Positions 2,234 through 51,989 of a stretch of 64,000 nt of DNA are shown one piece after another (within the stretch, counting starts at the first letter, position 1; each line of letters begins with the position of its first letter). The position numbers and the translations under genes are program-made. The stretch lies in contig CM035357.1 in the NCBI GenBank assembly GCA_020137815.1, positions 434,001 to 498,000 on the forward strand. Direction: 5' to 3'. Origin of the DNA: Hormiphora californensis (lineage: Eukaryota > Animalia > Ctenophora). Under the pieces are notes generated by a model. It was not told where the DNA came from. It worked only from the letters and a program-made list of their open reading frames with translations, and ran no database searches.

Positions 2234-4574
2234 ATGGTTCGTTTTGGTATTATTGTGTGTGATGGCAACCCAAAATGGATTTCCATGCTTGAAGACATTG
2301 CAACTGAGTAAGTGTGAAGTTTGTTATGTTCTAAACCTCCTTTACATTTGTGTTTCGCGGGCGGGGCGCGTGCAACAGGGTCTAGCTAGCCAATGTGAAG
2401 TATGATGCACTGCCCTTATTTCCTGGACTAGCCAGCTGAATTCAATAATCGTCTCCACAATTTCCAATTTAAAATTATACTTTAGTTCAAAGTCAAATAT
2501 TATTTCAGGTTTTTCTATAGACCCGGCGACCACCCTCTAGAATATTTCCACGCCTGGAAGGGAGATGTACCAACCCTTGCCAGTACATCACATCTAGATG
2601 GTCTCATATCACTTGGGTCAGCCCATATGGTTAGTACTGCGTCATGGCACCTCTTAGAATCGCTTTTCACTCCATTAAATGTATAGATGGGATTGAAATA
2701 TGCAGCTTCTCGCTCAATCTGATATGCACATGAACCCTATTTAGTAGCCTGATGACATCATCCCTATTATAGGTGGACCAGGTAGATTCTACACCATGGA
2801 TGAGACAACTTGGAAACTTCTTTCTCGCCGTGGAGAACAGTTCAATCAAGGTACACACTTACAAAAACACGTGTATGCACTATGCACTAACATGTAAACC
2901 TAACCCCATATCCTAACGCTAAAAGCAGTGCTTGTTAAAACTTAAAACTAATCCAATACCCATTTATCATCAATTGGTTATCCCAAAAACCCCAAACCAC
3001 CTATTACATTTCAGCTGGTATGTATCTGCTTCAGTCACCAACTGATAAACCACGTGTACGGTGGAACAGTGGGTAAAGGAGACTGTGGGTTTGTGTTTGG
3101 GGCTGCTGACACTGTTATCAACTTTTCTGCAATCTCGGAACACAATCAACTGACGTCATTGTTCAAGAGATACTCAACGGGAGGCAGTATGAGGTTGCTG
3201 GAGTCACACAGGTATTATACAAATACACAGGTATTATAGGTTGTTGGAGTCACACAGGTATACAATGCAATATCCCCCTGAGCCCATGATAGGATGTTAC
3301 AATGCAACATCCCCCAAAGGATATTGGCACGGAGAAACAGCTGCACTTTCACCAGGAGAACACATGCGTTAGCGCAGCAACGCAGCGTGGTGAAAGCTGC
3401 AGGTTTCTCCTAGTGAATATCTTTTGGGGGATTGAACTTTTTATACGCGTCTACTGGTACAACTGAGTCAAGCGAATCTAATACAATACAATCAAATACT
3501 GCTTTAGATGAAACCTTGTTTAGTATCAAGGTTCAAAGGCCAAAGTAAACATTTATCAGTTTAATTAAAAGTTGAATGTATCGCAGCTTAACTTGCAAAA
3601 GTGAAACAGTTCACGCCAACATGGTGTGTTGTAACTCAAACTCGAATCAACTAACTACTATTACCTATTTTACTCTATTATTTTAACTATAGATAGTTGA
3701 TTTGGAGTTAGAGTTAGTAAACTTATTTAAACTTTATCAGCTAACTTTTAACATATTGTTCTACAGGGATGGAGTTGCTATAATAACATTATTCTATACA
3801 GGGATGAAGTTCAGCTAACAATATTGTTCTACACAGGGATGAAGTTCAGAAGATAGCTAAGGGCGGTGTTCTAATTGGAAGTTCTAAAAGCTGTAAAAAC
3901 GAAATGGTACTAGTCAGAAACAATATCATCTCTTTGCAGTCTCATCCTGATCTGTCACCAGGTTAGAGCTACTATTGATAATACATAATAGTACACATGA
4001 GCCTATAGCTAGTAATAGTTGTAGTAATAGTAGTTAATAAAAGTTAAAGTACTAGATTAAATATTCGCCAGGTAAAAGCTACTAGTTAAGTTAGAGAGAT
4101 TCTATAACTGAATATTATATTTTTAGATCAGTTTTACAGCTTGAGCAATAGTTCATTTTATAAACCAAAATAATATGTGGTATGAAAAAATGTAGTAACA
4201 AAAAACATATATGCGGACACGAAATGGCATAATTATTTTTGATCTTTATGTTAATTCTAAAGTGAATTCCTTTCGTACAGAATTGATGATGCTGGGGGGG
4301 GGGGCTCTCCTAGTGCCGGTGATATCGCTTTGCGATAGTCCCCTGTGGGCTTGCCGTTGGGCGTTGGGATGCCCAGGCGGTGCAGGCACTCTGCAGACAT
4401 GGATAAATCTCAACATATGTTCCCTTTTCAGAGTTGATGATGGATAAGATCTGGCCCGCACTGATAAGTAAAGGAGCTGTAAGTGAAGCTAAAAGAGAGT
4501 TCTACGAAGCCGAAATGACAAATCTCCACACCATCCCTTGTCTTCAGCTGATACGAGAGTTCTTGAAACACTGA
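2234..4574 (+). CDS. Class-I glutamine amidotransferase-like protein (GATase1_1 / gamma-glutamyl peptidase-like), 6 exons
   Basis: Exons about 2234-2307, 2509-2629, 2773-2850, 3015-3211, 3837-3961, 4432-4574, all GT-AG and phase-compatible. Protein: MVRFGIIVCD...DGLISLGS...LVCICFSHQ (nucleophile elbow, cf. GICFGHQ)...ESHRDEV...SLQSHPD (cf. QGHPE)...LIREFLKH*. Confidence 0.85.
3308..3433. repeat. Imperfect hairpin/MITE in a GATase intron
   Basis: ATCCCCCAAAGGATATT...GGAGAAAC...TTTCACCA / TGGTGAAAG...GTTTCTCC...AATATCTTTTGGGGGAT. Confidence 0.55.
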
Positions 4575-5792
4575 GAGAGAAATACCAAAACAGGGGATAT
4601 ATATTTTGAGAGTTATATAGATAGGGACATTCAATTGGATTGTAGAATGATATCAATGAAAGTCAGGGACTGTATTTACTAAAATTCGGTTGTGTTCTTC
4701 GTTATAGAAGATCAATAATCTCACTGTGATTTGTGGGGATTGTGTCCTCAGGAGAACTCGACAGGGCAATGAAATAATATATAGTAGTCAAGCCTCGATA
4801 TACCGTGCACTTCGGATTTATATATTGTTCAAAAACCCTTCTCGACCGAGTAGGTAAATCGGGTTCCAACTGTGTAATTAATTAACTATTAATTATTCTG
4901 ACAGCTATGATGAATATGATATTTTCTTTCATAAAACTCCCAATGAAACTTGTTTATTTTGACCAAAATGTGGAAGATGTGGTTTCTGCAGTAAGTTAAT
5001 ACTCTCATCTCCAGCCTAGCTTCTCATGTAGAAAACTCAATTGGGACAGACCAACGACCCCCCTTGATTTAGTTTTATAGCTTCTTCTGAAGAGAGCTAA
5101 AGAGAGAGGAGTCCTGCAGCCATCACCTCATGTTTTTAGTTTTTACTTCCTACTGTGAATCCTAGCTCCAGTGCTGCGTGTTAAGAAGACTTTGCTTTTA
5201 CTAGCTGATATTCGGCATGTTTATAAATTGCAGTAGTATTTCATCCCTGTTGTTAAAGGGATACACCAGGTTAAGATTTGTTACATGTTCTACATGTTCA
5301 CACTTGATTGTATCCATCCTCAAGACTCTGATAAACAAAACAGATGAATCCAACGACTCCTGCTGTATTTACTGTACGTGTACATTAGCATTTAGCATAT
5401 TACCTACATATTATTATTATTATATTACCTACATATATTTAGCAAATAAAAGAATATAACAGAACGATCATGAAATTGTTTTTGCACGTGTACCTCTTAT
5501 AAAATCTTATGAACACTAAAATTGTTTTTATAGTATCCCAATCTTTAAATAGTTTGGTGTATGTGACCCTGTGTGATGTTTGTTTTCCCACTCTGATCTG
5601 TGTAATACACTTGTTATTGCAGCAGAGACTTCACCGCTTGTTTATCTTACACAAAGTCTAGCACGTTTCCTTTCACTCTGTTACCGGCAGCTTGTACTGT
5701 CGCGGTCGAATTGCTGTGTGCCTGGTATTTTCTTTTAGAATGATTAGTAGTGATTCATTGATTACTCTTACACTTATAGTTATACTGAACTG

Positions 5793-6041
5793 TATACCTT
5801 ACTCTCGTTTTTTAAGAAACGCTTTAGTAAGAAACTTTTTTATAAGAAACTTTTAAAATGTAAATCGCACAATTCAGAGACACCACAACAAAATAGAACA
5901 CCCCTAACTTGTTTAGTTTCTTGATAAAGGAGAAATTCTTTTTGTTTTTGGATTCCTTACACCTGTAGTTTCCTAGAAAAAAAGTTCCTTATTTAAAAGT
6001 TTCTTGAAATATGCGAGCTTAATTAACGAGAGTAAGGTATA
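5793..6041. mobile_element. Short MITE with TA ends
   Basis: TATACCTTACTCTCGTT ... AACGAGAGTAAGGTATA with inner inverted TAAGAAAC motifs. Confidence 0.6.
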
Positions 6042-6593
6042 TTATAAAGATGGCATAATATATTTCATTCAATATTTTAAAGATAGCAGGGTATATTTAA
6101 TATTTGTTTCATTCATTTTCCATCCCACATCACGTTTTTATTTCAACAAATAGTAACACATCTCATCTGATTATCTGCACGTTCAAACCCAGCAATATCA
6201 CGTTCAAATTTGAACAAAGATTCGATGTGGCCCCGTTCAACACCACACTAAAACATGCCCTCTCCCTCCCCTCTCTGTTTTGTCTGATCATGCAATGATC
6301 ATCACAGTAATCAGATATTGCGCTGAACTTGAGTTCTCAGGATCAATGTTTGGTTAGTGAAATAGTGCACTTGTATAGTTTGTATCTGTCGAAGCACAAT
6401 GAATGATACAACCGCTACAGCCATGACTATTTTGGTAACAAAATTTCGAATGCATTGCGGGATTCCCGGGAAATTTCCTCATCGGGAAACAATCGGGACT
6501 AAAAACTAAGGTTCAGTTATTTTCCCTCCCTAACCCTGCAGATCATGGCGCCATTGAATTTGAATGTAAACTTGTTTCCCTAGATAAACAAAC

Positions 6594-6818
6594 AGCAATT
6601 ACCACCCACATTCTCGCCTGCAGCAGTACTCATTCTCCCTGACCTACTCCCCCTCCCCTCGTCATGTCAATTACCACCCACATTCAGCAGTACTCATTCT
6701 CCCTGACCTCCCTCGTCATGTCGTTGTTTGTGCAGCAATTACCACCCACATTCTGCAGTACTCACTCTCCCTGACCTACTCCCTGGTCCCCCCCCCTCGT
6801 CATGTCATTGTTTGTTCA
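6594..6818. repeat. Degenerate tandem repeat, 3 units of about 70-80 bp
   Basis: AATTACCACCCACATTC...CAGTACTCA.TCTCCCTGACCT...CCTCGTCATGTC x3. Confidence 0.75.
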
Positions 6819-7449
6819 GCGATATACCATCATGGTCTAACAATGATCATTTCGACGTCGGCATGTAGATTTAGTTATTTTTAATTCACATACTAACCAT
6901 TAAGATGTCAACTTCCACCCTTCACAAACCATCAATGACAAACAATTTGTTCGTCAGACCATGTTTACTACGCAAGGGCCGGTAAACAAAGATCTTTTTG
7001 ACAATGACTTCTTCGTGTTTTGTTTACTTTGGCCTACTTTAATACACACACCAAGTGTGTATCATGTACCTATCTTTTCAACACGCAAAGCCTCATTAGG
7101 CCATGTGGCATGTACAAATACACACGTGCATGAGAATACTTTTCTAAAATATTGCCTGTTTCTATAATTTGCGTCGAATGAACGCACTTCCTGGTGCTCT
7201 TATAATATCTTCGGATTTATGTAATATTGTACATCTTTTATTTCTCTCCTTCTGATTTCACCCGCATTCATTTGTCTCTCGCATAAACTGAACATATAAT
7301 TTGCTATTTGTGACCATATAAATCATATATAATGCTGTCATAAAACTGATAAGACTTTTGAACTTTTGTAGTGCCTCACATAGCTGATAAAAGTGACCGT
7401 TTGAGTGTTTGACCTTGTGTTTTCTTGAAAATTGTTTTCTATCTGACAT

Positions 7450-8603
7450 CTGTGGTGGGAGAAATGGCTCACCCTAGAACAATTGCAAGTTAATAGCAAA
7501 AATGCATAATAACCTGTAAATCACATGTAATTCGAAGTTCAAACTAGTTTTGAAATAGTTTTGAAATTTTTTTAGAAAAATTTTAGTTTTAAAATAGCTT
7601 TTGAAATAGTTTTGAAATAGCTTTTGAAATAGTTTTGAAATAGCTTTTGAAATAGCTTTTGAAATAGCTTTTGAAATAGCTTTTGAAATGGCTTTGGACG
7701 GGTGGTAGAAATGGCTCATGTGGCTCATCTGGCAGCTGCACGATTATTATGAACACAAGGACATTCATATAAAAGCGAAAAACAGTGTACCCGACTAATT
7801 TTAATACGCTGAATCACGTGAGCAACTCTGGCAAGTGCTCAGATGTGAAGAAAGTGCCCTAATTGAGCAAAATTGGGTGTAATTGACCGGACTTACAACT
7901 TTTCTCCTGAAAACGCTAGAAGTTAATGTGAGGGCACTTTTCCGACTAACTTTGATACGCTGAATCACGTAAGCAACTTTTCCAAGCCCTAAGAGGCGGG
8001 GAAATTGCCCTAATTGAGCAATTATGGTCAATTAGACCCAATCAGACTCAATTAGGGCAATTTCCCCGCCTCTTAGGGCTTGAAAAAGTTGCTTACGTGA
8101 ATCAGCGTATCAAAGTTAGTCGGAAAAGTGCCCTCACATTAACTTCTAGCGTTTTCAGGAGAAAAGTTGTAAGTCCTGTCAATTACACCCAATTATGCTC
8201 AATTAGTGCACTTTCTTCACATCTGAGCGCTTGCCAGAGTTGCTCACGTGATTCAGCGTATTAAAATTAGTCGGGTACACTGGTTTTCACTTTTATATGA
8301 ATGTCCTTGTGTTCATAATGATCGTGCAGCTGCCAGATGAGCCACATGAGCCATTTCTACCACCCGTCCAAAGCTATTTCAAAAGCTATTTCAAAAGCTA
8401 TTTCAAAAGCTATTTCAAAAGCTATTTCAAAACTATTTCAGAAGCTATTTCAAAACTATTTCAAAAGCTATTTCAAAACTAAAATTTTTCTAAAAAAATT
8501 TCAAAACTATTTCAAAACTAGTTTGAACTTCGAATTACAAGTGATTTACAGGTTATTATGCATTTTTGCTATTAACTAGGGTGAGCCATTTCTCCCACCA
8601 CAG
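7450..8603. mobile_element. Foldback/palindromic non-autonomous element, arms about 560-570 bp, loop about 28 nt
   Basis: 7450-8018 is the near-perfect reverse complement of 8047-8603. It contains internal GCTTTTGAAATA 12-mers and is flanked by ACAT on both sides (7446-7449, 8604-8607). Confidence 0.85.
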
Positions 8604-8905
8604 ACATCTGTGGTACTATAGTACTTGAACATTTTCCATTAGTCTACCTCGATGATAGTAGCCCCTTCAAATTACATCTTATCTTCTTTACAGACGTTCA
8701 GACTCATGACCACACGCTCCGGCACACACATACATTGTCCTACAGCTATTCAATTCACCTCTCCCCCGACCTTCGACCTCTCCTAACTATTTCATTTCCC
8801 TCTCTGTAAAGCCCCGGCCTTCGACCTCTCCTAACTATTTCATTTCCCTCTCAACTCTGTAACTCAATATCATCTCTCCATGTAGCAGCTCACGCACATT
8901 ACACA

Positions 8906-8956
<51 letters not shown>

Positions 8957-9224
8957 AGAAAGAGAGAGAGAGAAGAGAGAAGAGAAAAAAGGGGGGAAAG
9001 AGAGAGGAGAGAAGAAGAAGGAGAGAGGGGAGAGGAGAAAAGAGGGAGGGAAAAGAAGGGGTTAAAGGGGCTTTATTTTTTCCTTTTTTTTTCTCCCCCC
9101 TCTCCCTCTTCTTTCCTGTTTTCCCTCCCTCCTTCTCCCGCCCTTCCCCCCCCCCCCCCCCTTCCCCCCCCCCGGGGGTACTTCCTTTTTGTCCTTTTTT
9201 TGCTTGAAACAGGGCCCAAATCCT

Positions 9225-10318
9225 TCCAAGGACCGCCACATTTATCGTTCCGGATCCACAGCACCACTCGCTCAGTGAGTTTCTGTTCTGTGATGAGTAC
9301 CCGGGTGTAGGCGGAAGGTCCGGCACTTCACGAAGGAAGCTATCCAGGTTCGCCTTAAATTCAGCCTGATCTGCAATTTCTCGAAGGTCTTTTGGCAATG
9401 AATTCCACAGCCTAGGACCCACTGAGCCAAATGATGAGCTATAGAGAGAAGAGTTTCTCTTGCTCTTGACCCTTGCAAGATCAGGTATCACCGCCTTCAG
9501 CCCATGCCTCGATGTTCTGTAGAAGGCGACATTGACATCATTTGGTACTACTTCATGCCGAATCTTGTGCATGTGTAGGATGGAGTACCTTTCACGCCTC
9601 CTTTGTAATGACATGAGTCCAAGGATTTTTAGGCGTTCCCAGTAGTCACTGTCCTGAAGCCCAGAAATCTTGGCAGTAAACCTTCTTTGAACCGATTCAA
9701 GGAGCTGTATGTCACCGACCAATTGGGGGCACCACAGAGGAGAGCAATACTCCATTGTGCTCCTCACTAGGCTCTTATAGAGAGTTATCATGAGGACTGT
9801 ATCTCTGCCACTAAAAACGCTGAGTATCCACTGGGACATTCTTCTGCCTCTTGTGGTCAGATTGACATAATGCGGCCTCCAGGAGAGATCTTCAGAGACT
9901 GTAACGCCCAAGTCTCGGAGCTGATCAGATGGTAGAAGGATCTCTCCACCACTAGTGTAGTAGTACACCGCAGACATCGGCATGTGGTTCATGAGAGATG
10001 ATCGATTGTGACGATGCACCATTAACTCATATTTCTCTTCATTGAGCTTCATATTATTTCTTTCAGCCCACTGATGCACACGATCCAAGTCTTTCTGTAA
10101 CTTCTCGCAATCCTCCTTAACAGAGATTTCCATGCCCACTCTGGAGTCATCAGCAAAGAAGCTTAGAAGGGCATCAAGCACTTCACCCTCCAAATCATTC
10201 AGAAATATCAAGAATAAGAGGGGGCCCAGCACCGTCCCCTGAGGGACACCGCTGATGATTACTGCTATTACTGAGTGACACCCTTCTAGCACAACCGTTT
10301 GTTTCCGGCCAGACAGAA
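9225..10318 (-). mobile_element. 5'-truncated non-LTR retrotransposon (CR1/L2-group LINE, RT C-terminal half) between (GA)n tracts
   Basis: SGVPQGTVLGPLLFLIFLND, FADD, RDLGV, LYKSLVRSTMEYCSPLW, LESVQRRFT, RLWNSLP. The 5' end abuts (TC)n and the 3' end runs into garbled purine-rich sequence. Confidence 0.9.
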
Positions 10319-10325
10319 GGGAGAG

Positions 10326-10373
<48 letters not shown>

Positions 10374-10727
10374 ACACACGCACACTCTGGATCATATAAT
10401 TGTCTACCTAGCTCTTAACTTCCCTCTCTATAATCTTGTGTGTGTTTGTCTTTTTGTTTCACAAAATATTATTCGAGGCCACCATCACCTGTAAAACCTA
10501 CAAACCTGGGCACAAATTCCTGATTTCCGGATCACAATAACCCAACTGCACGGCCCAATACATCATCCTAAGTCCTTACTGCTGCACCTATAACTCTGAC
10601 GTGTCACCGCGGGTTTGAACAAAACAATTCCTAACTCCTATAATACTGCTCCCATAACAAAACTCTGGAGTACCTCCTTACCACCGATTGTATAGCGTTA
10701 TTGGCGTGCTGCACGGGTCGAGGGAAG

Positions 10728-13700
10728 ATGATGTCAATACTGGATAAACTCCAGGGGAATATCTCTAATCGGGAACTCTCCAAATTCAGGGACCAGAATT
10801 ATGATGATGTGAGTTATTATACTTCTTCTCAACTTTACATCCTCTCAACTTTATATCCACTTCAAATCAATGTATCCGCTAAATTCAAACCATGTTGAAG
10901 TATCTTCTTTTTCTTCTAACTTCTCTAGCTCTAAAGTTCTTATCAAATATCTCTGCAGATCAAGAAGGAGTGTCTAGATTCTGGGGAGTACTGGACAGAC
11001 CCCCTCTTTGGACCTGAAGACACCTCACTTTGGGAGGGCGAGGCGAAGAAAGAAGTGGAGTGGATGCGAATCAAGGTAACCATTGGTTACTAACCAACCG
11101 GCATGATGATTATCATGGTCGTTGCTAGGTTTCTAGGTGCCCAGTGGGCACTGTCCACTCTAACATATTTCCAAATCAAAAGATGCCCGTCAAATTCTGC
11201 AGTACATCTTTTCACACGGCAGCTGCACACCACATGGGTTTTTGTGTTTCTCTCAGCCCTCTCTTAAAGTCCATAGCCTCATCTAAGCCTGTCCTTTTAC
11301 TATCTATCCTAACCGAGCCTGCATCCTGAATGTAGTTAATAAAGGAGCAGTTCTTTGAACTTCTCCTAAATGGTCCGTCAGTCCACCTCCAAACCCCTTT
11401 TATAGTCTCCTCCAATCCCCCCTCTAGGATATCCATGAAGGTGCAACCCCCCAACCTCTCCAACCTTTCCTACCCACCTCTCCAACCTCTCCTACCCACC
11501 CCTCCAACCTCTCAACCTCTCAACCTCTCCAACACACCCCTCCCACCCCTCCAACCTCTCAACCCACCCCTCCAACCTCTCAACCTACCCCTCCAACCTC
11601 TCAACCCACCCCTCCATCAGCAATGAATCTATTCTCTCCAACCCACCTCTCCAACCTTTCAACCCACCTCTAGCTCTCCAACCTCTCCAACCCTCTATTC
11701 TCTCCAACCCCCTCTCCAGGATATCCATGAAGGTGCAACCCTCTACGTGAATGGAGGATGTGAGGATGATGTGAGACAGGGCGCCATGGGTAACTGTTGG
11801 TTCGTAGCCGCTGTAGCATGCTTCGGAATCCACAAGAAACTCCTCGATCATGTAATACTTTAATTAACTGCTTAATTAACTACTTTTTAAATTAAGCTGT
11901 GTGACTGTTTACAGTCCCAGAGGAGCAACCCAAACCAAACCAGCTCAAGCTCAAATTTTTCTTTCTTTTAAACTCTGTAAAATTGAAATATCTCAAGTGT
12001 TTTACTCGTAATATTATCTCTGCCAGGTGATTCCAGAACCTAAGAAGCAGGATCCACAAGAGAATGAAGATTATTGTGGAATGTTCCTGTTCAGGTTTTA
12101 CAGGTTCGGAGAGTGGGTCGAGGTAAGAACTGTGGGTGGGGACGGGTGGGGACGGGTGGGGTGGTGGGGACGGGTAGGGTGGTGGAAGTTTTTTGGTGGT
12201 GGGGGTTCAGACACTTTAAATCAGGAATCACAAACTCAGCCTATCTCTCACACACTTCAAAGAATTTTCTAGTTTTTAAAACGGGGCTAAAAGTTCACAA
12301 TTTTATCACGTGTCAACATTTCTACTTTCTAGGTTGTGATTGATGACTGGCTACCTACACGTCATGGTAAGCTAGTATTCATGCACAGTACAGAGAAGAA
12401 CGAGTTCTGGTGTGCCTTGTTGGAGAAGGCCTACGCAAAGTAAGTGATCTACTTTATTAGATCTACTACTACTTTAGAATTCTAGAACAGAAATTGTAAA
12501 GAGTTATGGGGCATGAAATCACAACGTTTTGGAGCATGTAAGGAATCATAAATTCTCAATTAATAGCTTATAAACAACGTGTAGTAAACTAAAACAGAAA
12601 AAGCAGGATAAGCGGTCAACGTTTAGCAAGAAAACAGTATAGATACATTGTATATGGACAATATACATTTACATATTATGCATGATTGCATGAATGTACT
12701 TGTATGTTATACAAATACATTCATGCATTGTTCAATGCTGGATAAAAGCAACTTCCACCAAGTCAATAGAAAGAGAGAAAAGAAACTAAAATAAGAACAA
12801 TCGAAATTGTAGCAATATTATTGTAAAAACACAGAAGAAGGCAATTAGTGATAGTAAAACTAAATAGTACTGCAATGAAAATTACAGGAGCTATTGGTAA
12901 TTATGTCTCGCAGATTGGATTTTAATTGGGATTGTTTGATTTTGAAGAACATTGTTTCCTAATTATACTCCCTAATTGTTTCCTAATTGTTTCCTAATTA
13001 GGTAATTTGAAGACTCCCCTAATTATACTTCCTAATTAGGTTGGCTGGAAGTTACGAGGCACTTGATGCTGGACGACCCGCGGATGCCCTTACTGATCTA
13101 ACTGGTGAGTCTCAGGATATATGTTGAGTCATTGGAAAGATCTCCCATTCAAAGTTTTCGGATGGTACAATAAGGATTCATTGAATTTGAATCCGATCCA
13201 AATTTCTAAATCACAACTTTAACTCATATCATATCATTAGTAATAACTGATCAATCTAAATCTCAATTTTGTTCAGGCGGAGTCAGTCAGTTTACTGACT
13301 TTACAAAAGCTAACATCCGAGAGGATGAGGTTGCTAGAGAGAAACTGTTTCAGTAAGTACATGATTTGAGATGTTGCACAACTCCTCAAACATATATAGG
13401 TTCTGTCTCACCTTTTTAGCACTCATGAAATTCGTATGAATGGTCTGCGGACATTAAGTCCACGGCCGTACAAGGTATAACCGACTAACAAACATACCTT
13501 CTGGTATGTTTCTATCAAAAGTCGTAACTCTAAAAACATCCCTGAACCCCCCCCCCCCCCCCCACTTCAGAGATCTGTTGAAGGCGTTATCCCGGGACTC
13601 CCTGGTGAACTGCAGCATGGTAGTTGATGAGCATGAGAACATGGAATCGATGAGGGAAAGTGGTCTGATCGTGGGGCATGCCTACACTCTCATCAAGTGT

Positions 13701-16692
13701 TATGAGTTGTCCCTGGGATTCCTAGGGTTGCAGGGGCGACACAGGCTGGTTAAGCTGAGGAACCCATGGGGAGGGACTGAGTGGAAGGGAGCCTGGAGTG
13801 ATGATGATCCGAGGTGGGCCGAGATATCCGAATCGAAGAAGAAGGTAACGAAACGTATTTGCCACTACTTTAGGATTTGAAGATAATCCCAGCTCCCCAA
13901 TGATGCCTGCAGCCTCACAATTGCCCCCTAATCATCTCCTAACTGCCTTTACCTCCCCCTCCTAATCAGTGAGTTAATTAATTATCCCCTAATTACCTCC
14001 TAATTATCCCCTAATTACCTCCTAATTATCCCCTAATTACCTCCTAATTTCAGGAGATCGATTTCACGAATTAGTTAATTAACTACCCTCCAATAACCCC
14101 TCCTAATTTCAGGAGATGGATTTCACTAATGAGGATGACTACCTACCTCCCCTCCTAATTAATTAGTTAATTAATTAATTACCTCCTAATTTCAGGAGAT
14201 GGATTTCACGAATGATACCCCCCCCCCCCTTATTTCAGGAGATGGATTTCACGAATGAGGATGATCCCCTCCCCCTAATTATCTCCTAATTACCAGGAGA
14301 TGGATTTCACGAATCAGTTAATTAACTACCCTCCAATAACCCCTTCTAATTTCAGGAGATGGATTTCACGATGGATCCCCTAATTACCCCCTAATTTAAT
14401 AATTACCCCCTAATTTCAGGAGATGGATTTCACGAATCAGTGAACTAATTATTCCCTAATGACCCCCTAATTTCAGGAGATGGATTTCACGAATTAGTTA
14501 ATTAATTACCCCCTAATTACCTCCTTATCAGGAGATGGATTTCACGAATGAGGATGACGGAGAGTTTTGGATGGAATATGATGAACTGATTAAGAATTTT
14601 GATAATATCACCATCTGTCGAATCATTAATTTGGACATGAATCTGATCAGAAAAAGGGTAAGAAAGATCTAAATTGTATCAGCTGGGGGGACCACATACA
14701 GCACTGTACTGAAATTCGCACCGCCGTAGGTGGTGCCTCTAACTTCAGTTCTCACTAGCACATACAACACTTTCGGTGCAAACTCCAGTACGCACTGCCG
14801 TATGTGGTGCCTCTTACTGATAAATATCGGTGGGACTATCAGTACACAATCTCACGTGAGCTTAGCTCAGAAAAGATCAGTACGGTGCTGTATGTGCTCT
14901 TCGTACTGAACTGAAAGGTCACGTGCACGCACTAGCCAATGACAGACCTGCATCTCACAATACACACACACACCCACACCACAGCAACCAATAAGAGGCG
15001 CACGCACTCTCACTACGACAGAAAGGGCCACACCTAGAACAAGGGCGAGATTATCCGACATATCGAGAAAATATGTGCTGCAATCGGGAAAGATAAGAGA
15101 GAGAGATAAGTGGAGATAAACATAACAAGAGAGAGAAAAGGAGGTAGAGAGAGTTCGGTATTAGTGAGAGGAAGATATTTCACAAAAAATTACGTGTTTT
15201 TAGCTTGTTTTGAAGGTTTTTTATTGATTGTTCAGTAAGAGGCACCACATACACTCACTGTACTGAAGTTTCCACCGACAGTATGTGGTGCGACGTTCTG
15301 GAGTTCGCACCGGTGCTGTATGTGGTCCCCCCTGGGAAGTTTTCCAGGTGATCTATTCCTATTCAACCTTTGAAAAGGAAATTGCGAATTTCATCTGACT
15401 GACGAACTTTCTTCGAAGGACAGTCAGTGACTGCATCCTTTGAAGAAGGTTCATCGTTTGGTATTTCTGTTTTTATTTCTACTAGTCAGAACACAGAATT
15501 CCATGTATTTACTTCCAAGTACATAGTACTATTACTGATATTCCCACAGTGGTACCTGAGGGAGATAAGGGGGAAATGGACACCAGGTGAAAATGCTGGG
15601 GGATGTGCAAACTTCAAGGAAACCTTCTACACCAATCCTCAAATTCAGGTTGGAATAAGACTGGGACTTAACTATAATTCCAATACCGTCTGGGATGGTT
15701 CTGTGACTATAAGTGTTTTACAAACAAAGCTTTTCCTGTCCAATTAAATATTGGTACAATTTGTATCATTTGTACTACAAAGACACATGATAACAGTTGT
15801 TATTCCCACACAGTTCAAGATCCTGGAAGAAGATGATGAAACTGTACAGATTGTTCTGGCTCAGAGGGATCTGAGGATCGATGATTTGGATAACCATGTC
15901 ATTGGCTTTAGGATATTCAAGGTACTTACTACAATTATCATCAATCAAGAATTCGCCGCACTTTTACCACGCCAATCATGAATTCGCCGCCATTTACCGC
16001 GCCAATCAAGAATTCGCCGCGTTTTTACCACGCCAATCAAGAATTCGCCGCGTTTTTACCGCGCCAATCAAGAATTCGCCGCTTTTTTACCGCGCCAATC
16101 AAGAATTCGCCGCCATTTACCGCGCCAATCAAGAATTCGCCGCGTTTTTACCGCGACAATCAAGAATTCGCCGCCATTTACCACGCCAATCAAGAATTCA
16201 CCGCGTGATCTTTCTAGGAGTTTACACCAGCTATCCACTGAGCCTTGTAATTAGAAATGTTTATTTTCCTTATAGGTTGCAGATAATAACGATGCCAAGA
16301 TTGTTAGAAAGGGAGGGAAAGCTGTTGAAAAGGCTCCCTACAGTAATGTCAGGGAGATTTACCATAGATGTCGGTTGGAGGTTGGTACCTATGTCATCAT
16401 TCCTACCACCTATGAGCCTGATGTTGAGGCAGATTACCTACTGAGGATCTTCACTGAAGATGACGCCTGTGTAGAGTGAGTAGATAATAGGGCTATCAAC
16501 ATCCAAATTAATTCAATTTATAGTTCCCATCTAGTTCAAGTTTCGATCGTCGGGCCGGAGGTGCCTACTCGTACCAAAATATGCTCGAGAAGCTGGCATT
16601 TGGCAACTGGAATTTGTTATCTGGATTCTGAGTTATGATAGCTTTTCGAAACTGTTAACTAACTATTGAACCTTTACAGGGTTCTTGAATGA
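10728..16692 (+). CDS. Calpain cysteine protease (CysPc + CBSW/domain III; no PEF or C2 tail seen), about 13 exons
   Basis: Spliced exons give [20 protein letters not shown] (catalytic Cys), [25 protein letters not shown] (His), LRNPWG (Asn), DDGEFWM, AGGCANF...[13 protein letters not shown]...YLLRIFTE, and a terminal exon VLE*. The start codon is uncertain. Confidence 0.93.
14040..14560 (+). repeat. Calpain acceptor echo cluster: 8 intronic copies of ...CAG|GAGATGGATTTCACGAAT before the real exon start at 14532
   Basis: CAG copies at about 14051, 14110, 14193, 14236, 14294, 14353, 14417 and 14474. The real acceptor at 14529-14531 continues [14 protein letters not shown]. Confidence 0.92.
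14686..15331. mobile_element. PIF/Harbinger-like MITE in a calpain intron
   Basis: TIRs GGGGGACCACATACAGCAC / GTGCTGTATGTGGTCCCCC with subterminal repeats. 3-bp CTG flanks on both sides (CWG-type TSD). Confidence 0.65.
15942..16206 (+). repeat. Intronic minisatellite, about 30-bp unit x9 (CCAATCAAGAATTCGCCGC..TTTACC.CG)
   Basis: Lies within the calpain intron at 15922-16275 and is not derived from exon sequence. Confidence 0.85.
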
Positions 16693-20556: not shown

Positions 20557-20658
<102 letters not shown>

Positions 20659-24038: not shown

Positions 24039-27000
24039 CTACGTTATCGATCGACTCGACCCATTAAATCCATTCAACGCGACCTGAAAATGGGGGAAGA
24101 GGTTTTAGATTGAGTTAAAATAAATGATAATACTTTGTCATACGGTGCTTGTCAGGGGAAAGAGTATATCAAGCCGTTCAGAGCCGCTATATTTTACTGA
24201 ACACATTATATGTTCGGGATAAGTAGATTGGTTGTGGTGCACCATACCCACCATCACCATGGTGACAAGAGGGGGAGAGAGATCAAGAAAGATATCATTC
24301 GAACACACGATGATGCCAGCATATATTGAACACTCAGCCGAACAACAAAACACAAACCATGTGCAGCTTATAACCTTCCTGTAAAACATGCCCTTTCTAG
24401 AGCAGTATATGTTTAAGATATGAGAGTAAGTGGATCGGACACGGTGTAGAAAATCAGTTATATTTAGTGGAAACCAAGCAGCGACACGCTTGAAACAAGG
24501 CACACGTGCGACACACATAAACATTCATTCTGAATAGTGATAACTCTTGCTGAAGCATTCTGCTTTCAAATTAAAGCTAAATCAAACACACAGAATGCAG
24601 CTGGAAAGACACATGTACTACACACGTGCATTGTGATTTAACACACATGTACACACGTGTTTACCATTTCAAATGTATTCCTACAATTGGACTGATCCCC
24701 TTCTGAGGCTGAGTTTAGTTGGGGGAGTGTTGCTGATCGGACACGTGATACCCCTCGAATACCCTGGGTAACCTAGAGAGTGGGAATGGTAACCATGGTA
24801 ACCTAGAGAGTGGGAGTGGTAACCATGGAGCTAGTGGGAGTGGTAACCATGGTAACCTAGAGAGTGGGCGGTGGTAACCAAGGTAACCTAGAGAGTGGGA
24901 GTGGTAACCATGGTAACCTAGAGAGTGGTAACCTGGGTAACCTAGAGAGTGAGAGTGGTAACCATGGTAACCTACAGAGTGGTCGTAACCATAGAGTTAG
25001 TGATGGATCGTGGTGTTGCACTGATCTATTATTCTATCCTAGTAAAAAACTTGGTACACAAATTAGATATCAATCAATCTCACATAGTGGAGGTGTACAA
25101 ATCATTTGGAACAGTGAATAATGGAGTTCAGTATTTTACTATTGAGACAGTATACCATGGACACAGAAACGTGATCTACCAGACATGTATGATTAGTTGA
25201 TATACCGAACCCTCACAGAGAACGGTGTGAGCTACACAAATGATCACACCTCTACTACTAATCATTAGTACATTGGTACACACACATGTCACACCTCACG
25301 CCTCTGCCTTCTCTCCGTGGCTGTTTGTGCTGCAAAAGCCCCCTTTCTCCTGACCCTCCTCCACCTGGCAGCGGCTCGTGCAACTCCAAAGATATGGATG
25401 GTGGGGAGGGGAGGTTCCTTCTCACTATCTAGATAGGCCAGGGTGTGCTAGAGAGACAAAGAGAGAGAGAGAGAGAGAAAGATAGAGTAGAGAGAGATAG
25501 AATAGAGATAATAGATAGAGAGAGAGAAGAGAGAAATAGGAAAGAGATAAAGAGATATAGAGAGGATAGAGAGATGCTACTGATAGATCATCCTCATGCT
25601 ATGTATCCTAGATACTCGAGACCGAGCTCTCTGCTCTAATCGTACGCTCTCTCTCTCTAGTCTCTCCTACTCGCTTCTTCTCTGAAACATCTGAGAGAGA
25701 GGGAAAAAAGTTGTTCTAACATCGAACCCTCATTTGTTTGTTTGTGATTGCTGCATCCAAAGGTTCTAACCCTTACGATGCCGTGATAGAGGGTTCAGGT
25801 GAGCAAGGTTTTATCTACCGAACCCTCACAGAGCCGGACAAAGCAAGGCAAGAGAAAATGTTTAAGCGTGCATCACACTTAAACACAACATTATTACTAA
25901 CTAATTAATTAATTAATTAATTAGTATAATTACCTTACTGACACTGTCAGCTAGTTGACCGATAACGAAACTCCACGACGTGGTACAGCCCGCTGTGATC
26001 GTACCCTTACTGACCAGGTAGTCAAACGCCTGGGGGAGTTAATTGGGAGTTAATTGGGGAGTTAATTAGGGGACTAATTGGAAAGTTAATTGGGAGTTAA
26101 CTAGCTGTGATGGTACCCTTACTGACCAGGTAGTCAAACGCCTGGGGGAGTTAATTAGGGAGTTAATTAGGGGACTAATTGGAAAGTTAATTGGGAGTTA
26201 ACTAGCTGTGATGGTACCCTTACTGACCAGGTAGTCAAACGCCTGGGGGAGTTAATTAGGGAGGTAATTAGCTGTGATGGTACCCTTACTGACCAGGTAG
26301 TCAAACGCCTGGGGGAGTTAATTAGGGGACTAATTGGAAAGTTAATTGGGGGTTAATTAGTTAGTGTTAATTAGGGAGTTAATTAGAGAGTTAAAAGTCA
26401 CGGCGGAAGTTGTTGAGTAAGGGAACAACTAAACGTACCACTCCGAATATTTGGTGAACACTTTCCAACCGCTGTCCTCTTTTACACTCAACTATCTTGT
26501 CAAGTTGGTTATCCTTTTGGAGTGTTCCAGACACCATTAACCAACTATCAATCGATGAGTTGCTGCCTCGATAGTTCTGAGGATGGAGAGGAGGGGGGGG
26601 GGGGTTAGGTAAAATATGTATCTCCCTTTCAGTCTGTCTCTTTCTTTTTCTCTGTCTCTCTTCCTTTCAGTCTACCTCTATCTATCTTTCTCTTTTTCTT
26701 TCGTTCTCTCATTCCCTCCCTCCCTCCCAACTGCAACTCTCGCTCTCACCTGTCCGGAGTCGTTCCCCTCGCTGTGATCCCCTCCTGTTCCCCCGTTAGT
26801 ATTATCCACCCCGTTGTTATGGTGATCCGGTGCTGATCCGTTCTGATCCCCAGTTGTTGTGGTAGTTGTTGAGGATCCTGCACCATTACTGCTGGGTTCA
26901 CCTACACTTGCCACATTACCATTCACACCTGTCAGAGATTAGGAGGGGGTTACTAGCAGTTCACCTACCACTTACACCTGCAGGAGGGAACATTCTACAT

Positions 27001-30000
27001 CTATAATAGAAAAAGGGCAGGGTCTAAGAGGGAAAACAATAAAATGAAAGTCTCTCTAAAACATTCCGTACCATTTGATGGTATATAACCATTCCCGCTG
27101 GTTGACCTACCATTTGATGGTATATAACCATTCCCGCTGGTTGACCTACCATTTGATGGTATATAACCATTCCCGCTGGTTGACCTACCATTTGATGGTA
27201 TATAACCATTCCCGCTGGTTGACCGGGACCGGGGAGGACTTGATAAGTGTCTCTCTGATTCTAACATCAGTGTAGCGGGACTACTGCTTCGCCCATTACC
27301 TGATGGGGGAATTGTCATCATACGTGAATATAATGTACGGAGGGGGGATTGTCAGGGAATTGTCATCAGAAGTGATGCATAATTTGAAGAAGGACGGAAT
27401 ATTCTTCTTCCGAAATGTTCTAACATTATGTTCAAATACACCCAATAACACCTAATTAAACCCAATCGCTCACCATTTTCACTATTGGTGTAGGTGAGAT
27501 TTGAACACACAGTGTCGGTAATACTATCAAAACTATTACATTTCATCACATGTCCACCCGTCTTCTCCTGGTCTCCTCCCTTATACTGACTGGTAGGGGA
27601 GAGGAGGGTTAGGGATCACTCTGGAGTTTCATTTGGGGGGGGGGGGGGGGGTATTTAAGGGTACACCTCGGCAAAATTTTTGTCGAGTGCCCGCTTAGCT
27701 CTCCATATGGGGTTGTAGGGCATACCAAGCCGACCTCAAATATGCAATTTTAGCCCTTAACTCGAATTCATATTTTTGCCTTAACGGTCCAAAGTTTGAC
27801 CCTAAAAACCGGTTTTTAAGGTCCCTAAATTTTATTTTTAGGGCTAGAAAGCTGAAAATTTAGGGATTCATAGAGGATACCAAGGTGTATAGCTCAAACA
27901 GAAATTTTTTGAAATGGAGCTCAATTTTTTGACTGGGACTATTTTACTTTTTTTGACTTTGAGGCCATATTTGGACATGTTCCTATGGACCGTTAAGGCT
28001 AAAAATTGGATATTTGGTGCTCCTAACAATTGTCAAAGTAGCCACAAATTTTCAGGAGGTCCGAATTTGAAATGTGGCCTACAGGTTTCTTTTTGTAAAG
28101 CACATATTTTAGGAAAACTTAAAATGGCTATATCTCAAAAACGGTAGGTCCTAGCGATCTAATTTCGTGCTAAATCGATTCAGCGGGTCCGATTTTGGGG
28201 GGGTCGTCTCTTAGACATTTTGCTCTAAGTCTAACCGTTTTTTCAGAAATCGTATTTTAAGGTTTGTACATGTTTAGCAGAAATAGGTAAGATTAGCTCT
28301 AACTAGAAGCATTTCTGCTAAACATGTACAAACCTTAAAATACGATTTCTGAAAAAACGGTTAGACTTAGAGCGAAATGTCTAAGAGACGACCCCCCCAA
28401 AATCGGACCCGCTGAATCGATTTAGCACAAAATTAGATCGCTAGGACCTACCGTTTTTGAGATATAGCCATTTTAAGTTTTCCTAAAATATGTGCTTTAC
28501 AAAAAGAAACCTGTAGGCCACATTTCAAATTCGGACCTCCTGAAAATTTGTGGCTACTTTGACAATTGTTAGGAGCACCAAATATCCAATTTTTAGCCTT
28601 AACGGTCCATAGGAACATGTCCAAATATGGCCTCAAAGTCAAAAAAAGTAAAATAGTCTCAGTCAAAAAATTGAGCTCCATTTCAAAAAATTTCTGTTTG
28701 AGCTATACACCTTGGTATCCTCTATGAATCCCTAAATTTTCAGCTTTCTAGCCCTAAAAATAAAATTTAGGGACCTTAAAAACCGGTTTTTAGGGTCAAA
28801 CTTTGAGGGCCTGTAAGGCAAAAATATGAATTCGAGTTAAGGGCTAAAATTGCATATTTGAGGTCGGCTTGGTATGCCCTACAACCCCATATGGAGAGCT
28901 AAGCGGGCACTCGACAAAAATTTTGCCGAGGTGTACCCTTAATTGGGCATATTATTTGTTTGGCTCCAGAGTCCAGGGTTTAACATATAATATTAGAAGT
29001 GCTAAAGAAATAAAATCTAACCAGGCCCCAAATATTGGAACATAACAAAGGGATCTGGCGGGTTGCTTACTTTTGATACTGAGTAATGCTAAACTTACTT
29101 TTCATACTGGGTAATGCTAAACTTACTTTTCGTACTGAGTAATGCTAAACTTACTTTTGATACTGAGTAATGCTAAACTTACTTTTGATACTGGGTAATG
29201 CTAAACTTACTTTTGATACTGGGTAATGCTAAACTTTTCTTCTTTCAGAAACTGGAGGTAGTAAAAACAGAATAAAAACACGTCCTCTTGTTTCTGTAAT
29301 CTGTCCTCCAACTGATGCCTGATGATGAGATATATTATAGTGTTAATAAATCGTATCACAGTCTGTTATAATTCCAGAAGTATTTAATTAATAATTAAAG
29401 TCACTATTATGGACTGTAAACGCAGGTATTAAAAGTAAGAATGATAATTGATGATTTCTACTAAAGGTAAAATCTAGTACCTACCCGAAGAGCAGCCAGT
29501 CGTAAGCGATGGTGAGGTAGAGGATTTCCTTTGCATTTAAATTCTGATGTACAGCCCCGTCCTGATAGAGCAATTTCCAATTAATTAATTAGAAAGGAAT
29601 GAGGATAATTTCCAATCAACTACATAATTAGTAATGGATTTGTATTGGATAAAGACGTTGATGAAATATATTCAATATTCATGGTATGAATATATTGAAT
29701 ATATGATTCATGTAGCCGATAGTTGCATATTGCATCATAGGATTCAGAGAGAGAAAGAAATAGTATTGCATGATGGATTGAAAGAAGAGAGGACCTGTCC
29801 TTGGCATATTGCCAGTATTATTTGTATTGGAATTCAGCCAGTATTATATGTATTGGCTCGAAGCCAGCATTCACACTTACTGCCCATAAAGTAAGCCTCA
29901 GTAGAGAGACGAAGAGGGGTGTCCTATCCCAACCTGAGATACAGTGTAGCAATAAACCTCCCTCACCTGTTGTAGAAATAGTTGTTACGTTCCTCCTTTA

Positions 30001-39619: not shown

Positions 39620-39622
39620 ATT

Positions 39623-39780: not shown

Positions 39781-40080
39781 GACAAAAATTATGCTCTTTC
39801 CAGCGTTTTGCCGAAGTTTGAGAACAATAAATGGGCCCAACAGCTCCTCAAAGCTTGTTGTATGGCTCGCGAGTGCTCATTGGAGCTGTTCTGTGCTGGT
39901 GTGTGGTTGACTCTACCCAGTTTTCAACCCATCCACCTTTTCTCCCAATATTAAAACTTGTCTAAAACTCGGGGTGGCGGCCAACATCGGCCTGAATATA
40001 AATAAGTGTAGACACTTCACAATAAATAATCCCAATATTAAACTAAAACTTCATAACATTTCCCATCAGTAGATAGAGTT

Positions 40081-48982
<8,902 letters not shown>

Positions 48983-50093
48983 GAGATATCCTAGCTCTAA
49001 AACACAGTTATTTTGTATCCCTGTGCAGATGCATGGACACAACATGATTTTCTATCGAACTATATCTCTCAATTAGTACAGCCTAGATGAGCTGTGACGT
49101 GTGAGGAACATGCTGAAACGAGCGTGTGATAAAATGTGTAATATGTTTTTTATGATTTACGTAATTAGCCAAAAGTATAAAGAGAAAGAGAGAAAGAGAT
49201 CATTATGTGATTGTTGTTGGAGAAAGAGAAAGAGAGAGAAAGAGAGATCATTATGTGATTGTTGTTTGCGAAAGAGAGATATCATGATATGATATTGAGC
49301 TCACGATATTGTTGTTTGTAAAATATGTGGAAGATACTAGGACGCCTGACATTTGTTCATTTACCCATTTGATCTTTGAAGTTTTAAATATTGAGGAATT
49401 TACGTAAGAACATTTGTTGAACTGAAAAGAATGAAAAGGCGTGATCTCGAGAGAGAGCGTGTGTGGGAGAGACTCAGAAAAAAAGAAAGAGGGAGAGAGA
49501 GGGAGAGAGAGAAAGAAAGAGAGAGCGAGAGTGAGAGGGACACAGAGAGAGACAGAGAAGGAGCGAGAAAGAAAGAATCATGTTGAAATTGTATCCATTT
49601 GTTTTCTAAGATCTCAACAAAATAAGCACGCTTGTATCATTAGTACCAGAAGTTGTAAAAACACGCCTTAATAATATCTCTTCTTTTCATTGGTAATGCG
49701 CTGAGTCTTTTTTCTCTCTTCCTATTATTTGTGTTAAAGACATGTTAAAGATCTCTCTCTCGTTCAATCATCATAGCTTGTGATTATATCCACTCTCTCT
49801 CTGTGATTATATCCACTCTCTAGCTCTCTGTGAGAGTCTAATTAACATGTTATTAACACAACAAATCTCTCAAACATAGAGAAACCGGGTGGCCACACTA
49901 CACGGAAATCTGTGTACCACAACTGCAAACGACCCACACACATTGTCTCTTGTCAGCGCAATGTCACCAGCTAGTTCACTAGTTGCTGCTTTTGTGTCGA
50001 CTTGATCTACCCTCGGTAACTGCAGATATATCTCTCTCTTGTCAGATTATAACTTGAAGTGAGTGTCCCCCTGTGTTAGACATGTTCTGTCTG

Positions 50094-51989
50094 TTAGAAT
50101 CTTCGTCCACTCTTTTTCAGCTGAGCCCTGAACTTGGCCACTGTGTTGAGTAGATCGGTACCTGGAGAAAGAAGGTTTCAGTATAGGGGATATAATGGGT
50201 TTTAGTAAGTGGTTTAGGATGGGTGTTAATAATGGGTTGCATGGACCTTCGCTTTTGGAGACAAGAAACTGTTGATACATGCAGGTTGCCAAATTTGAGA
50301 AATTTGATGTTTGGCCGATGTGTGTTTATGTTCCAAAAATAGTCAATAATCACAAAAACAGTCACATGATCACTTCTCGTGTTTTGAGAGGAGCGAGAAG
50401 AGTGGTCATGCATTGTTTTGACGCCTGACAGACTCCTTGTTCATTACCAACAACAGATCAGAGAGAGAAAGAGAGAGAAAAAAGAGAGCAAGAGAGACAG
50501 AGTGCGAAGATGCGTATTTTAAAATACGGCGAATGTACAATGACACGAGATGCTGTTTGCTAATCGGATTTGAGTCGCCGCGTCTGCTGCTGAACGGCGA
50601 ACTTTTTTACCAACGGAACACGGCTGCATAGCAAGACATATTCTAGACGCATTGACGCAAAACAGACAAATTTTTCAGATTGAAAAGTTTTTCTCTTTTG
50701 AGCTGAGCTGTCGGAATCGTTCACGGAAATAGCAAGCGAGTTTGTCACTGTTTAACTAAGAGAGAACTCACCTTCTACCCGGTTAGTAAAGTATTGGAAG
50801 AAGATAAAATCAATTACACACGCCACTCCTAACACGGCCGCCATCATTGTCAGCCATTGCTGGTTTTCTGGAAGTGTCCAGTAGAGTATCAGACAGATCA
50901 CAACTGAGGAAATAGAGAGGTTGTACCAGAACGCCCTAACATTTACCGCAAAGTGCAAAACCCAAAAAATAACTATCACGACTTTCGTTTTGAAAACAGA
51001 CAGATTAAATAACACTGCAAAGTGTGAACTGTGAATTGAACCAGCTCCGTGCAGATATGACTTACTGAGTGTCGGTAAAACGTAGAGGAGGATCTGGCTA
51101 ACTTTCTGCATCACTATAACAAGTTTCCTTCTCTCCTTCGCTCTTGATACGGCAGCTGTGAGGAGAGGGGAATATATTAGGTTTAAACAGTTGCACAAAG
51201 TTTATTGGAAAACACCGACAGAACAAGACAAAACATATACAGACATCACGGTGGGCGCCCTTGTTGAGTAAGGAGTGAGACTCAACATGGGCGCCCACCC
51301 CACTAACCCCAAACACTGACAGAGAGACCCTTCCCCCTCTCTTTCCCCCGCTTCTTACAACCCTCCCCTCCCTTCCTCCACCCCATATAACAACCTCCCT
51401 CTCCATCCCACTCTGATCTCTCTATCTCGAACCTGCGGCAGTCTCTGATCCAGCATGACTAAGAATATCCCTCCCCTCCCTCTCTCCCATCCCCTCCCTC
51501 TCCCCCCAACCCCTCCCTCTCTCACAGCAGCACCTGTGAGCAGATCTGCTCACCTGCGGCAGTCTCTGAACCAGCATGACTGAGAATACCCAACCCCTCC
51601 CTCTCTCACAGCAGCACCTGTGAGCAGATCAGCTAACCTGCAGCAGTCTCTGATCCAGCATGACTAAGGATATCCAGGGCACTGGGTCTCCTACTCCCAT
51701 CATATCCTCCCATATCCGCCACACTCAACAGTGATCCCCTCCTGCTCCCGTTAACACTTGCAATACTGCCATTCCTATGTGCCCCAATGGGGGTCTTCAG
51801 GAGGTTGTTCCCCACACTGGTAGGTGGACTATCTTTAGGGCAGGTCCTGGCAGCTGCAGTGGTGGGAGCAGCAGGGGGTGGCATTAGGATGGAGTGGTCG
51901 GTAGGGGGCGGGGTTGTGGCTGTGGTCTGAACGAATGGGACCGTTGCCGCGATGTGAGGTTCCAACTCTATCTCTTCGTCTCCAGACAT
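50094..51989 (-). CDS. Uncharacterised multipass membrane protein with a Pro/Thr-rich cytoplasmic N-terminus, 3 coding exons
   Basis: Exons about 51989-51638, 51155-50772 and 50161-50094 join in phase 1. There are 3-4 hydrophobic segments (VVIVIFWVLHFAV; ISSVVICLILYW; MMAAVLGVACVIDFIFF), RRGS/RRPS motifs and a basic C-terminal tail. No family recognised. Confidence 0.7.
51430..51672 (-). repeat. Donor echo x2 of the first coding exon of the membrane-protein gene
   Basis: The exon end GAT ATC CTT AGT CAT GCT GGA TCA GAG ACT GCT GCA G|GT is copied at about 51551-51590 and 51430-51470. Confidence 0.9.

Follow-up and report, generated by a model that had tools for sequence, protein, structure and literature searches.

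Intronic tandem copies of exon ends in the ctenophore Hormiphora californensis differ mainly at silent codon positions

Minisatellites that straddle a splice junction are known from several human genes. According to one published account (PMC1557585), these include the 37-bp variable-number tandem repeat of F7 intron 7, IFI6 (6-16), CBS intron 13, LMNB2 and PDGF, and their copy number is polymorphic. As described there, F7 normally uses only the most upstream donor, which is chosen by 5′-to-3′ scanning, and IFI6 and CBS also use the two nearest pseudo-sites. Here we analyze related arrays in the ctenophore Hormiphora californensis, in a window of 64,000 nucleotides (contig CM035357.1; C8:434001-498000) and in the 200 kb upstream of it, where the introns hold tandem copies of the adjoining exon end together with its splice site. 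We term these copies echoes. As in those human cases, the first monomer lies across the exon–intron boundary and the donor is repeated within the intron. Unlike the human cases covered there, the arrays are pervasive here, with at least 24 families in 264 kb, involve acceptors as well as donors, and reach 105–176 units. Junction-spanning arrays are thus of a known kind that is unusually pervasive at this locus. What appears to be undescribed is that the echoes vary almost exclusively at silent codon positions; we found no description in the literature of silent-only variation among intronic monomers, and the available part of PMC1557585 does not mention it.

The sequence analyzed totals 264 kb of one haplotype assembly (110.7 Mb in 45 contigs) and consists of the window and of C8:234001-434000, the pieces of which are labeled L. 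The published assembly of this species spans 110 Mb in 44 scaffolds, with 13% tandem repeats and a single-nucleotide polymorphism (SNP) heterozygosity of 2% (PMC8527503). In our 264 kb, tandem repeats account for 18.6% of the sequence, and arrays with a period of at least 15 form 145 clusters. Arrays were shortlisted when the outer unit runs on into an open, coding-like flank, and the reading frame was fixed from the unique exon flanking the array, never from the variants. Echo copies were located by coordinates only, in an ungapped best-segment or block search that used the true junction unit as probe, and each allele unlike the live copy was scored once per column. An automatic junction finder built on splice motif, open frame and codon log-odds proved too permissive and misplaced the junction of the MAP-kinase-like ('p38') gene; it served for shortlisting and for the control set only. 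The curated set comprises 20 junction-echo families with usable data and four invariant families. Genes are named by Pfam matches to exons searched singly. Frames are supported by Pfam for the hydrolase, two G-protein-coupled receptor (GPCR) exons, the SLC6 transporter, the MAP kinase, calpain, ARL2BP and DCP1; support is weaker for two GATase exons, whose matches lie below Pfam's cut-off, and for four families the frame is backed by open-frame length alone. The names 'MTMR14', 'SelP-like' and 'membrane gene' are labels from an earlier model-made reading of the window (hereafter the original prediction) and could not be confirmed.

The echo arrays are real, and besides p38 and calpain the other spliced genes of the window have comparable arrangements at their flanks. 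A unique open frame enters the outermost unit only, so that the first monomer (the last, for acceptors) spans the exon–intron boundary and the rest are intronic; Pfam-matched frames back this arrangement in seven families. The GT or AG is intact in nearly every unit, the exceptions in p38 being GTTAGT in 4 of its 106 units. Tandem mutually exclusive exons were considered as an identity for the arrays and rejected, each unit having one splice site and most unit lengths not being multiples of three.

The original prediction had counted, by hand, about 17 silent and 5 non-silent changes among the echoes of the window. Our exhaustive tally of the window likewise gives 17:5, with slightly different lists (p38 singletons were added and a few edge mismatches trimmed), where chance would give 0.21–0.28 silent depending on the transition weight (P = 3e-8 to 2e-6). 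It had also proposed a wider tally, and across the 264 kb the bias proved stronger: the sequence outside the window contributes 37:5, and all 20 families together give 54:10 against a chance fraction of 0.22–0.28 silent for transition weights of 1–4 (P = 5e-26 to 2e-20, with the caveat that events inside one array are not fully independent). Restricting the tally to Pfam-verified frames leaves 42:7 (a set that contains the two sub-threshold GATase matches), and restoring the trimmed edge mismatches gives 57:13. Echoes also vary among themselves at silent sites, as had been claimed, with 26:4 for echo-versus-echo variation alone. Even with frames ignored, a test of position modulo 3 singles out two arrays: all 8 variable columns of the first share a residue class (P = 5e-4), as do 11 of the 12 in the second (P = 1e-4). 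In the small arrays, 20% of third codon positions are variable, compared with 1.4% of first positions, 0.5% of second positions and 3.7% of the intron-derived part. Two-fold sites vary by transition only, four-fold sites reach three alleles, and there are up to five versions of one exon end. As a control, 53 tandem arrays that are not echoes were taken through the same pipeline in their best pseudo-frame; they give 19:41, with changes spread over the three codon positions as 20:17:23, and differ from the curated set at P = 2e-9 by Fisher's test.

These observations bear on whether the bias could arise without selection, through mutational preference for CpG sites or transitions, through bias in the hand tally, or through mixing of haplotypes during assembly or polishing. 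The assembly does derive from noisy long reads of a heterozygous animal, polished with short reads, and many of the indels in the distal p38 units could be errors. The exhaustive tally reproduced the hand count, however, and the controls are flat across codon positions. Only 13 of the 54 silent events lie in a CpG context, and transitions stand to transversions as 35:19, so that neither hotspot class accounts for the whole bias; a full explanation by such hotspots is what the original prediction had named as a ground for its refutation. Columns with three alleles and exon ends with up to five versions exclude a mixture of two haplotypes, and changes that follow the degeneracy of the code respond to a property that an assembler cannot see. 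The pattern is not accounted for by CpG context, a preference for transitions, a mix of two haplotypes or a paralogous copy elsewhere. A sequencing or assembly artefact is unlikely, as the original prediction had argued, and we consider an origin without selection, taken over all these routes, very improbable.

The longest array of the window provides an internal control. The p38 intron opens with 106 tandem 38-nt units, each consisting of the exon's last 27 nt followed by GTGAGTATTTT. All four of its common variable columns are at third codon positions, and the first 87 echoes contain 47 third-position substitution cells as against 2 others. The distal 18 units (47377-48066) show the reverse, with 2 third-position and 23 other cells in addition to 21 deletions (P = 1e-14 versus the first 87). 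The same sequence thus decays randomly with respect to codons at the far end of the array. Indels and G>T or A>C changes are numerous in these distal units, in contrast to the first 87, and either stem from genuine decay at the edge of the array or are long-read errors that polishing missed. Among the p38 units, exon copy included, all four allele combinations are present, and minor alleles in the exon state lie closer to the exon than expected by chance (P = 0.001–0.013).

The upstream 200 kb supplies the clearest cases. Three copies of a hydrolase exon end encode an identical 26-residue peptide despite 14 silent changes, among them four-fold sites with three alleles, and two copies of a GPCR exon end encode identical peptides with 8 silent differences in 25 codons and no others. 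In ARL2BP, four echoes of an exon start are separated by strongly diverged, indel-rich spacers, and the 50-nt exon part varies at six silent sites only; here too, all four allele combinations occur among the units, exon copy included. An annotation-free self-BLAST scan recovered the GPCR and ARL2BP arrays; its remaining period-3 matches had four mismatches and were set aside as non-coding satellites. Counting upstream from the true ARL2BP exon start, the nearest echo is reached after exactly 42 codons without a stop, so its use would add 42 in-frame residues. The hydrolase exon end has no further copy anywhere in the assembly, which rules out a paralogue as donor of its variants, and a metagenome scan for hydrolase relatives returned distant hydrolases only. 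One related protein (86% identical) reads straight through the ~75-nt intron without an echo, so the array is not shared with that relative. In a second sample carrying the same species label, contigs differ at 11–15 of ~155 bases (7–9%) in a coding exon of the hydrolase gene (L014:4280-4443; C8:368280-368443), a divergence that would fit either very high within-species diversity or a cryptic sibling species. In that sample the hydrolase array shows ~10x higher word depth, a figure confounded by poly-G and repeats. One RNA contig stops where the repeat begins, and the contigs obtained from reads, being dominated by repeats, yielded no exon-end alleles.

Across 24 families, the mean divergence between an echo and its exon on the same chromosome is 0.097 at third positions, 0.0096 at first and second positions and 0.017 in the intron-derived part, and in many arrays it is zero. 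A ratio of about 0.1 between the first two figures is typical of polymorphism in live genes, and both the level and the ratio resemble such polymorphism in a very diverse species. The data support a protein-level filter acting on echoes that are not translated, with non-silent divergence about one-tenth of silent divergence, and to this extent the interpretation offered in the original prediction stands. Untranslated intronic DNA can, then, bear the signature of protein-coding selection, and gene finders that rely on conservation or on the ratio of non-silent to silent divergence (dN/dS) would miscall echo copies as exons.

The other half of that interpretation, a plain archive of past exon states, fares less well. 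If echoes were neutral fossils of earlier exon ends and only the exon were constrained, ~63% of differences should be silent at equal mutation rates; the enlarged sample rejects this model (P = 1e-4; P = 4e-4 for Pfam-verified frames), and the window by itself gives P = 0.11. Taken with the 26:4 among echoes alone, this rejection implies that changes in echo lineages are themselves filtered, or never arise in place. In the hydrolase and ARL2BP arrays, the two best with multiple copies, divergence is greatest in the echo next to the exon, and echoes differ from one another at silent sites with three alleles. Some differences are indeed specific to the exon, as an archive predicts (CTA in p38, columns 31 and 43 in ARL2BP, ACG in the MTMR14-like exon). 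Third positions are also more variable than the adjacent intron-derived bases, and the reported SNP heterozygosity of H. californensis is higher in exons than in introns (PMC8527503), both in keeping with a variant in which the exon mutates at a higher rate of its own. Such an exon-only excess has no known mechanism, and we judge the archive, with or without it, to be quite improbable.

Several features speak to the age of the echoes and to traffic among them. In the two large arrays, variants shared by at least two units divide 6:0 between silent and non-silent, and singletons 3:5 (P = 0.03); singletons look neutral and unfiltered, and older variants filtered. Of the five non-silent differences in the small arrays, four are only a few bases away from a homology edge; the count includes one that the block search had trimmed and that was restored manually. 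The hydrolase array and that at 51.5 kb in the window have nearly identical intron-derived parts, yet many silent differences, which implies that silent changes enter faster than point mutation allows. The ARL2BP and calpain spacers, in contrast, are heavily diverged around an intact exon part, which marks these arrays as old and kept. The four allele combinations in p38 and ARL2BP, together with the placement of exon-state alleles nearer the exon, have the look of mosaic footprints; recurrent mutation could also produce the combinations.

Part of this evidence would be accommodated if the units were allelic from birth, having arisen by unequal crossing-over between diverged homologues with fast turnover and neither later exchange nor selection on the echoes. 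The mean third-position divergence and the ratio near 0.1 look like allelic polymorphism, the species is highly heterozygous, the near-identical intron-derived parts of the hydrolase and 51.5-kb arrays suggest youth, and many arrays show no divergence at all. The evident age of the ARL2BP and calpain arrays, with their exon parts intact, is at odds with this account. So are the arrays of more than 100 units, which grow by internal amplification and still have common variants that are silent only, the presence of all four allele combinations among units, and third-position divergences of 26–38% in some copies, which exceed the documented heterozygosity. Allelic birth without exchange therefore seems to us unlikely.

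The reading to which we lean, with roughly an even chance of being correct, is concerted evolution, in which echoes undergo conversion or unequal exchange with the live exon alleles of a very diverse species. Junction-spanning tandem duplications would be tolerated because the outermost splice site still yields the normal mRNA, and the live exon end and its intronic echoes would then behave as a small multi-copy family evolving in concert. Through gene conversion, unequal exchange or slippage, the live junction unit and its echoes would trade short tracts, both along one chromosome and, in heterozygotes, across homologues. A tract leaving the live exon would already have been screened by selection on the protein, and one entering the live slot would be exposed to it. 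With exchange faster than point mutation, amino-acid changes born in an echo would be overwritten or purged; the silent variants that persist and spread would be those that distinguish exon alleles in the diverse population. Units and edges that are rarely exchanged, such as array ends, homology edges and brand-new singletons, would decay neutrally. The exchange itself, its direction and its rate are what we infer; the silent-only pattern, its absence from control arrays, the random distal decay and the mosaic-like allele combinations are observed. In theory, selection on one copy extends to others through conversion, and silent copies can be maintained in this way (PMC3924837).

A scaled Wright–Fisher simulation served as a plausibility model. 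In it, non-silent divergence drops to 0.05–0.2 of silent divergence when 2N times the event rate is 100–400, and silent divergence stays near allelic diversity; the effective rate that the model requires is about 3–10 divided by Ne. The outcome does not change when copying runs only from exon to echo instead of both ways, so the present data fit an exon-refreshed allele archive and cassettes cycling through the exon equally well; on the model, flow back into the exon with selection, which the original prediction had offered as one possibility, would leave the same pattern as overwriting of the echoes by live exon alleles. We regard as tentative a genome-wide two-way reservoir in which intron cassettes regularly replace the live exon end and vice versa, leaving the intron under indirect protein-level selection and echoed ends several-fold richer in silent diversity. 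If it is true, alleles would in effect be archived naturally, at a rate of exchange open to measurement.

Four points weigh against concerted evolution in its simple form. In the same units, 34 of 167 third positions are variable but only 5 of 120 intron-derived positions at junction distances above 6 nt (stratified P = 0.0014), an excess that conflicts with the similar levels predicted by a simple model unless constraint acts on those intron bases or conversion tracts do not extend to them. The third-position differences of 26–38% come from copies of p38, GPCR, hydrolase and ARL2BP and lie above documented allelic diversity. That the copy nearest the exon should be the most diverged, as in hydrolase and ARL2BP, is unexpected if exchange weakens with distance. 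Finally, the repeats are short, 20–90 nt, a length at which classical homologous conversion is inefficient.

A different route to selection would be direct use, in which alternative, recursive or trans-splicing brings the echoes themselves into protein and so places them under selection; reading of echo units by recursive or trans-splicing would also be a still bolder version of the reservoir. Trans-splicing is frequent in this species (PMC8527503). Echo splice sites are almost all intact, and some units are in frame and open, namely the 39-nt units at 27069-27224, a 36-nt unit outside the window and the nearest ARL2BP echo. Most units, however, are not multiples of three (38, 31, 80, 78 and ~92 nt) or have stops in the intron-derived part, so that splicing at them would break the reading frame or terminate it. 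A donor echo is not paired with an acceptor, and no donor marks the beginning of the repeated segment; a search for tiny introns or hidden splice pairs that would make echoes translatable found none of general reach. A core that is repeated or shortened at its N terminus is implausible for a hydrolase or a GPCR, and the normally exclusive use of the most upstream site in human F7 (PMC1557585) points the same way. We think direct use improbable.

Concerted evolution with a silent partner has been described for gene conversion between pseudogenes and functional genes, for the major histocompatibility complex, for resistance (R) genes and for the pseudo-V donors of chicken immunoglobulin (PMC3924837). 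The echoes would resemble these concerted duplicates in that unexpressed copies exchange tracts with an expressed one, selection on which shapes and can preserve them. They differ in that the units are 20–90-nt fragments of a single exon inside the gene's own intron, not whole genes, and in that the variation they store is silent and gives no hint of diversifying selection. Introns are also reportedly created or extended by tandem duplication of a segment containing AGGT, according to Rogers' model and later genome surveys. The arrays share with that model a duplication that yields two equivalent splice sites and leaves the mRNA unchanged. Unlike Rogers' model, which concerns intron birth, they represent existing junctions duplicated again into arrays, and the new point is the later evolution of the copies. 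If exchange with the live exon is true, the arrays offer hundreds of natural replicates in which to study ectopic conversion between very short repeats, its reach, and the efficacy of selection in a marine animal of very high diversity. In addition, the arrays may account in part for the higher SNP heterozygosity that has been reported for exons than for introns of H. californensis.

Table 1. Positions, strands and frame support of the echo arrays (window positions unless labeled L or C8).
Feature	Position	Strand	Frame support or remark
GATase-like exon end and one spaced donor echo	3186..3261 (last exon base 3211; echo 3238-3261)	+	weak Pfam GATase match, E=0.019
Acceptor echoes of next GATase-like exon	3753..3850 (exon start 3837; echoes 3753-3765, 3788-3814)	+	Pfam GATase E=0.052
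Calpain, eight acceptor-plus-exon-start modules upstream of true acceptor	13979..14560 (exon start 14532)	+	Pfam Peptidase_C2 E=6e-7
'MTMR14', three acceptor echoes with ~13 codons of exon start each	25988..26395 (exon start 26029)	-	open frame only, no Pfam match
Four identical 39-nt donor units	27069..27224	-	no variation; contributes zero-divergence data only
Exon end and GTAAGT, then five 28-nt echoes	29066..29236 (last exon base 29211)	-	low-confidence frame: longest open frame, poor coding score, no Pfam match
MAP-kinase-like ('p38') exon end and 105 donor echoes of 38 nt	44046..48066 (last exon base 44072)	+	Pfam Pkinase E=2e-6
'Membrane gene', donor echoes 51509-51592 and 51430-51470	51420..51676 (last exon base 51638)	-	151-codon open frame, no Pfam match
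Acceptor echo of 'membrane gene' exon	51986..52111 (exon start 52032)	-	
Hydrolase exon end, three copies	L014:642-910		Pfam-supported frame
GPCR exon end	L004:7102-7262		Pfam-supported frame
ARL2BP acceptor echo nearest exon	L001:5764-6186	-	
SLC6 transporter, 176 tandem 31-nt units	L006:8406 to L007:3839 (C8:292406-297839)	-	

The remaining families of the window contribute few changes each (Table 1). The GATase-like donor echo has a single difference, CTG/TTG, which is silent at a first codon position. In the acceptor echoes of the next GATase-like exon, variation within blocks is confined to the intron-derived part, and GAA/GGA sits at a repeat edge. The exon-derived part of the calpain modules carries one silent change (ACG/ACT) and one that replaces Met by Ile (ATG/ATC), between spacers that are highly variable and with end points that differ among modules. 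All echoes of 'MTMR14' have ACC where the exon has ACG, a silent difference. The spacers between acceptor echoes at 13979-14549 and 25990-26395, in different genes, have in common a TAATTA-plus-C-run motif that includes a branch-point-like CTAAT. The five 28-nt echoes show silent ACC/ACT and TAT/TAC and a non-silent CAA/GAA. In the 'membrane gene', the donor echoes differ silently at ATC/ATT, CTT/CTC, GGA/GGT and GCT/GCC, with one GAT/GGT at a repeat edge and two differences only in the 45-nt intron-derived part; the two differences of its acceptor echo, ACG/ACA and CTG/CTA, are both silent.

The 31-nt unit of the SLC6 transporter array consists of AG and the exon's first 29 nt. The exon's own TTTATTTTC acts as the pyrimidine tract for the following AG, and the units begin AG|GT, resembling a recursive splice site. 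With up to 176 identical decoy sites, such an array is a severe natural test of splice-site choice. A 51-nt array at L019:6907-7240 (C8:420907-421240, + strand) was dropped as an echo; it is an in-frame 17-codon coding repeat within a GPCR C-terminal tail, inside a 286-codon open frame that continues from the transmembrane-7 segment.

Other repeats in the region are of different character. Unrelated arrays built on a common palindromic motif, GGTTACCATGGTAACC, occur at 24767-24982 in the window and at L006:3845-4155, L007:4469-4896 and 5233-5672, and L010:9606-9856, and resemble a dispersed satellite family. A 518-codon, reverse-transcriptase-like open frame at 8838-10391 (- strand) suggests a retroelement between GA and poly-C low-complexity runs. 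Two 23-nt tandem arrays, at 7584-7695 and 8370-8481, are reverse complements of each other and bracket ~700 bp; together they look like a transposon with repeat-bearing inverted ends, possibly duplicated. Across the whole genome, dozens of protein-kinase domains are complete in a single intronless open frame, beside intron-rich kinases.

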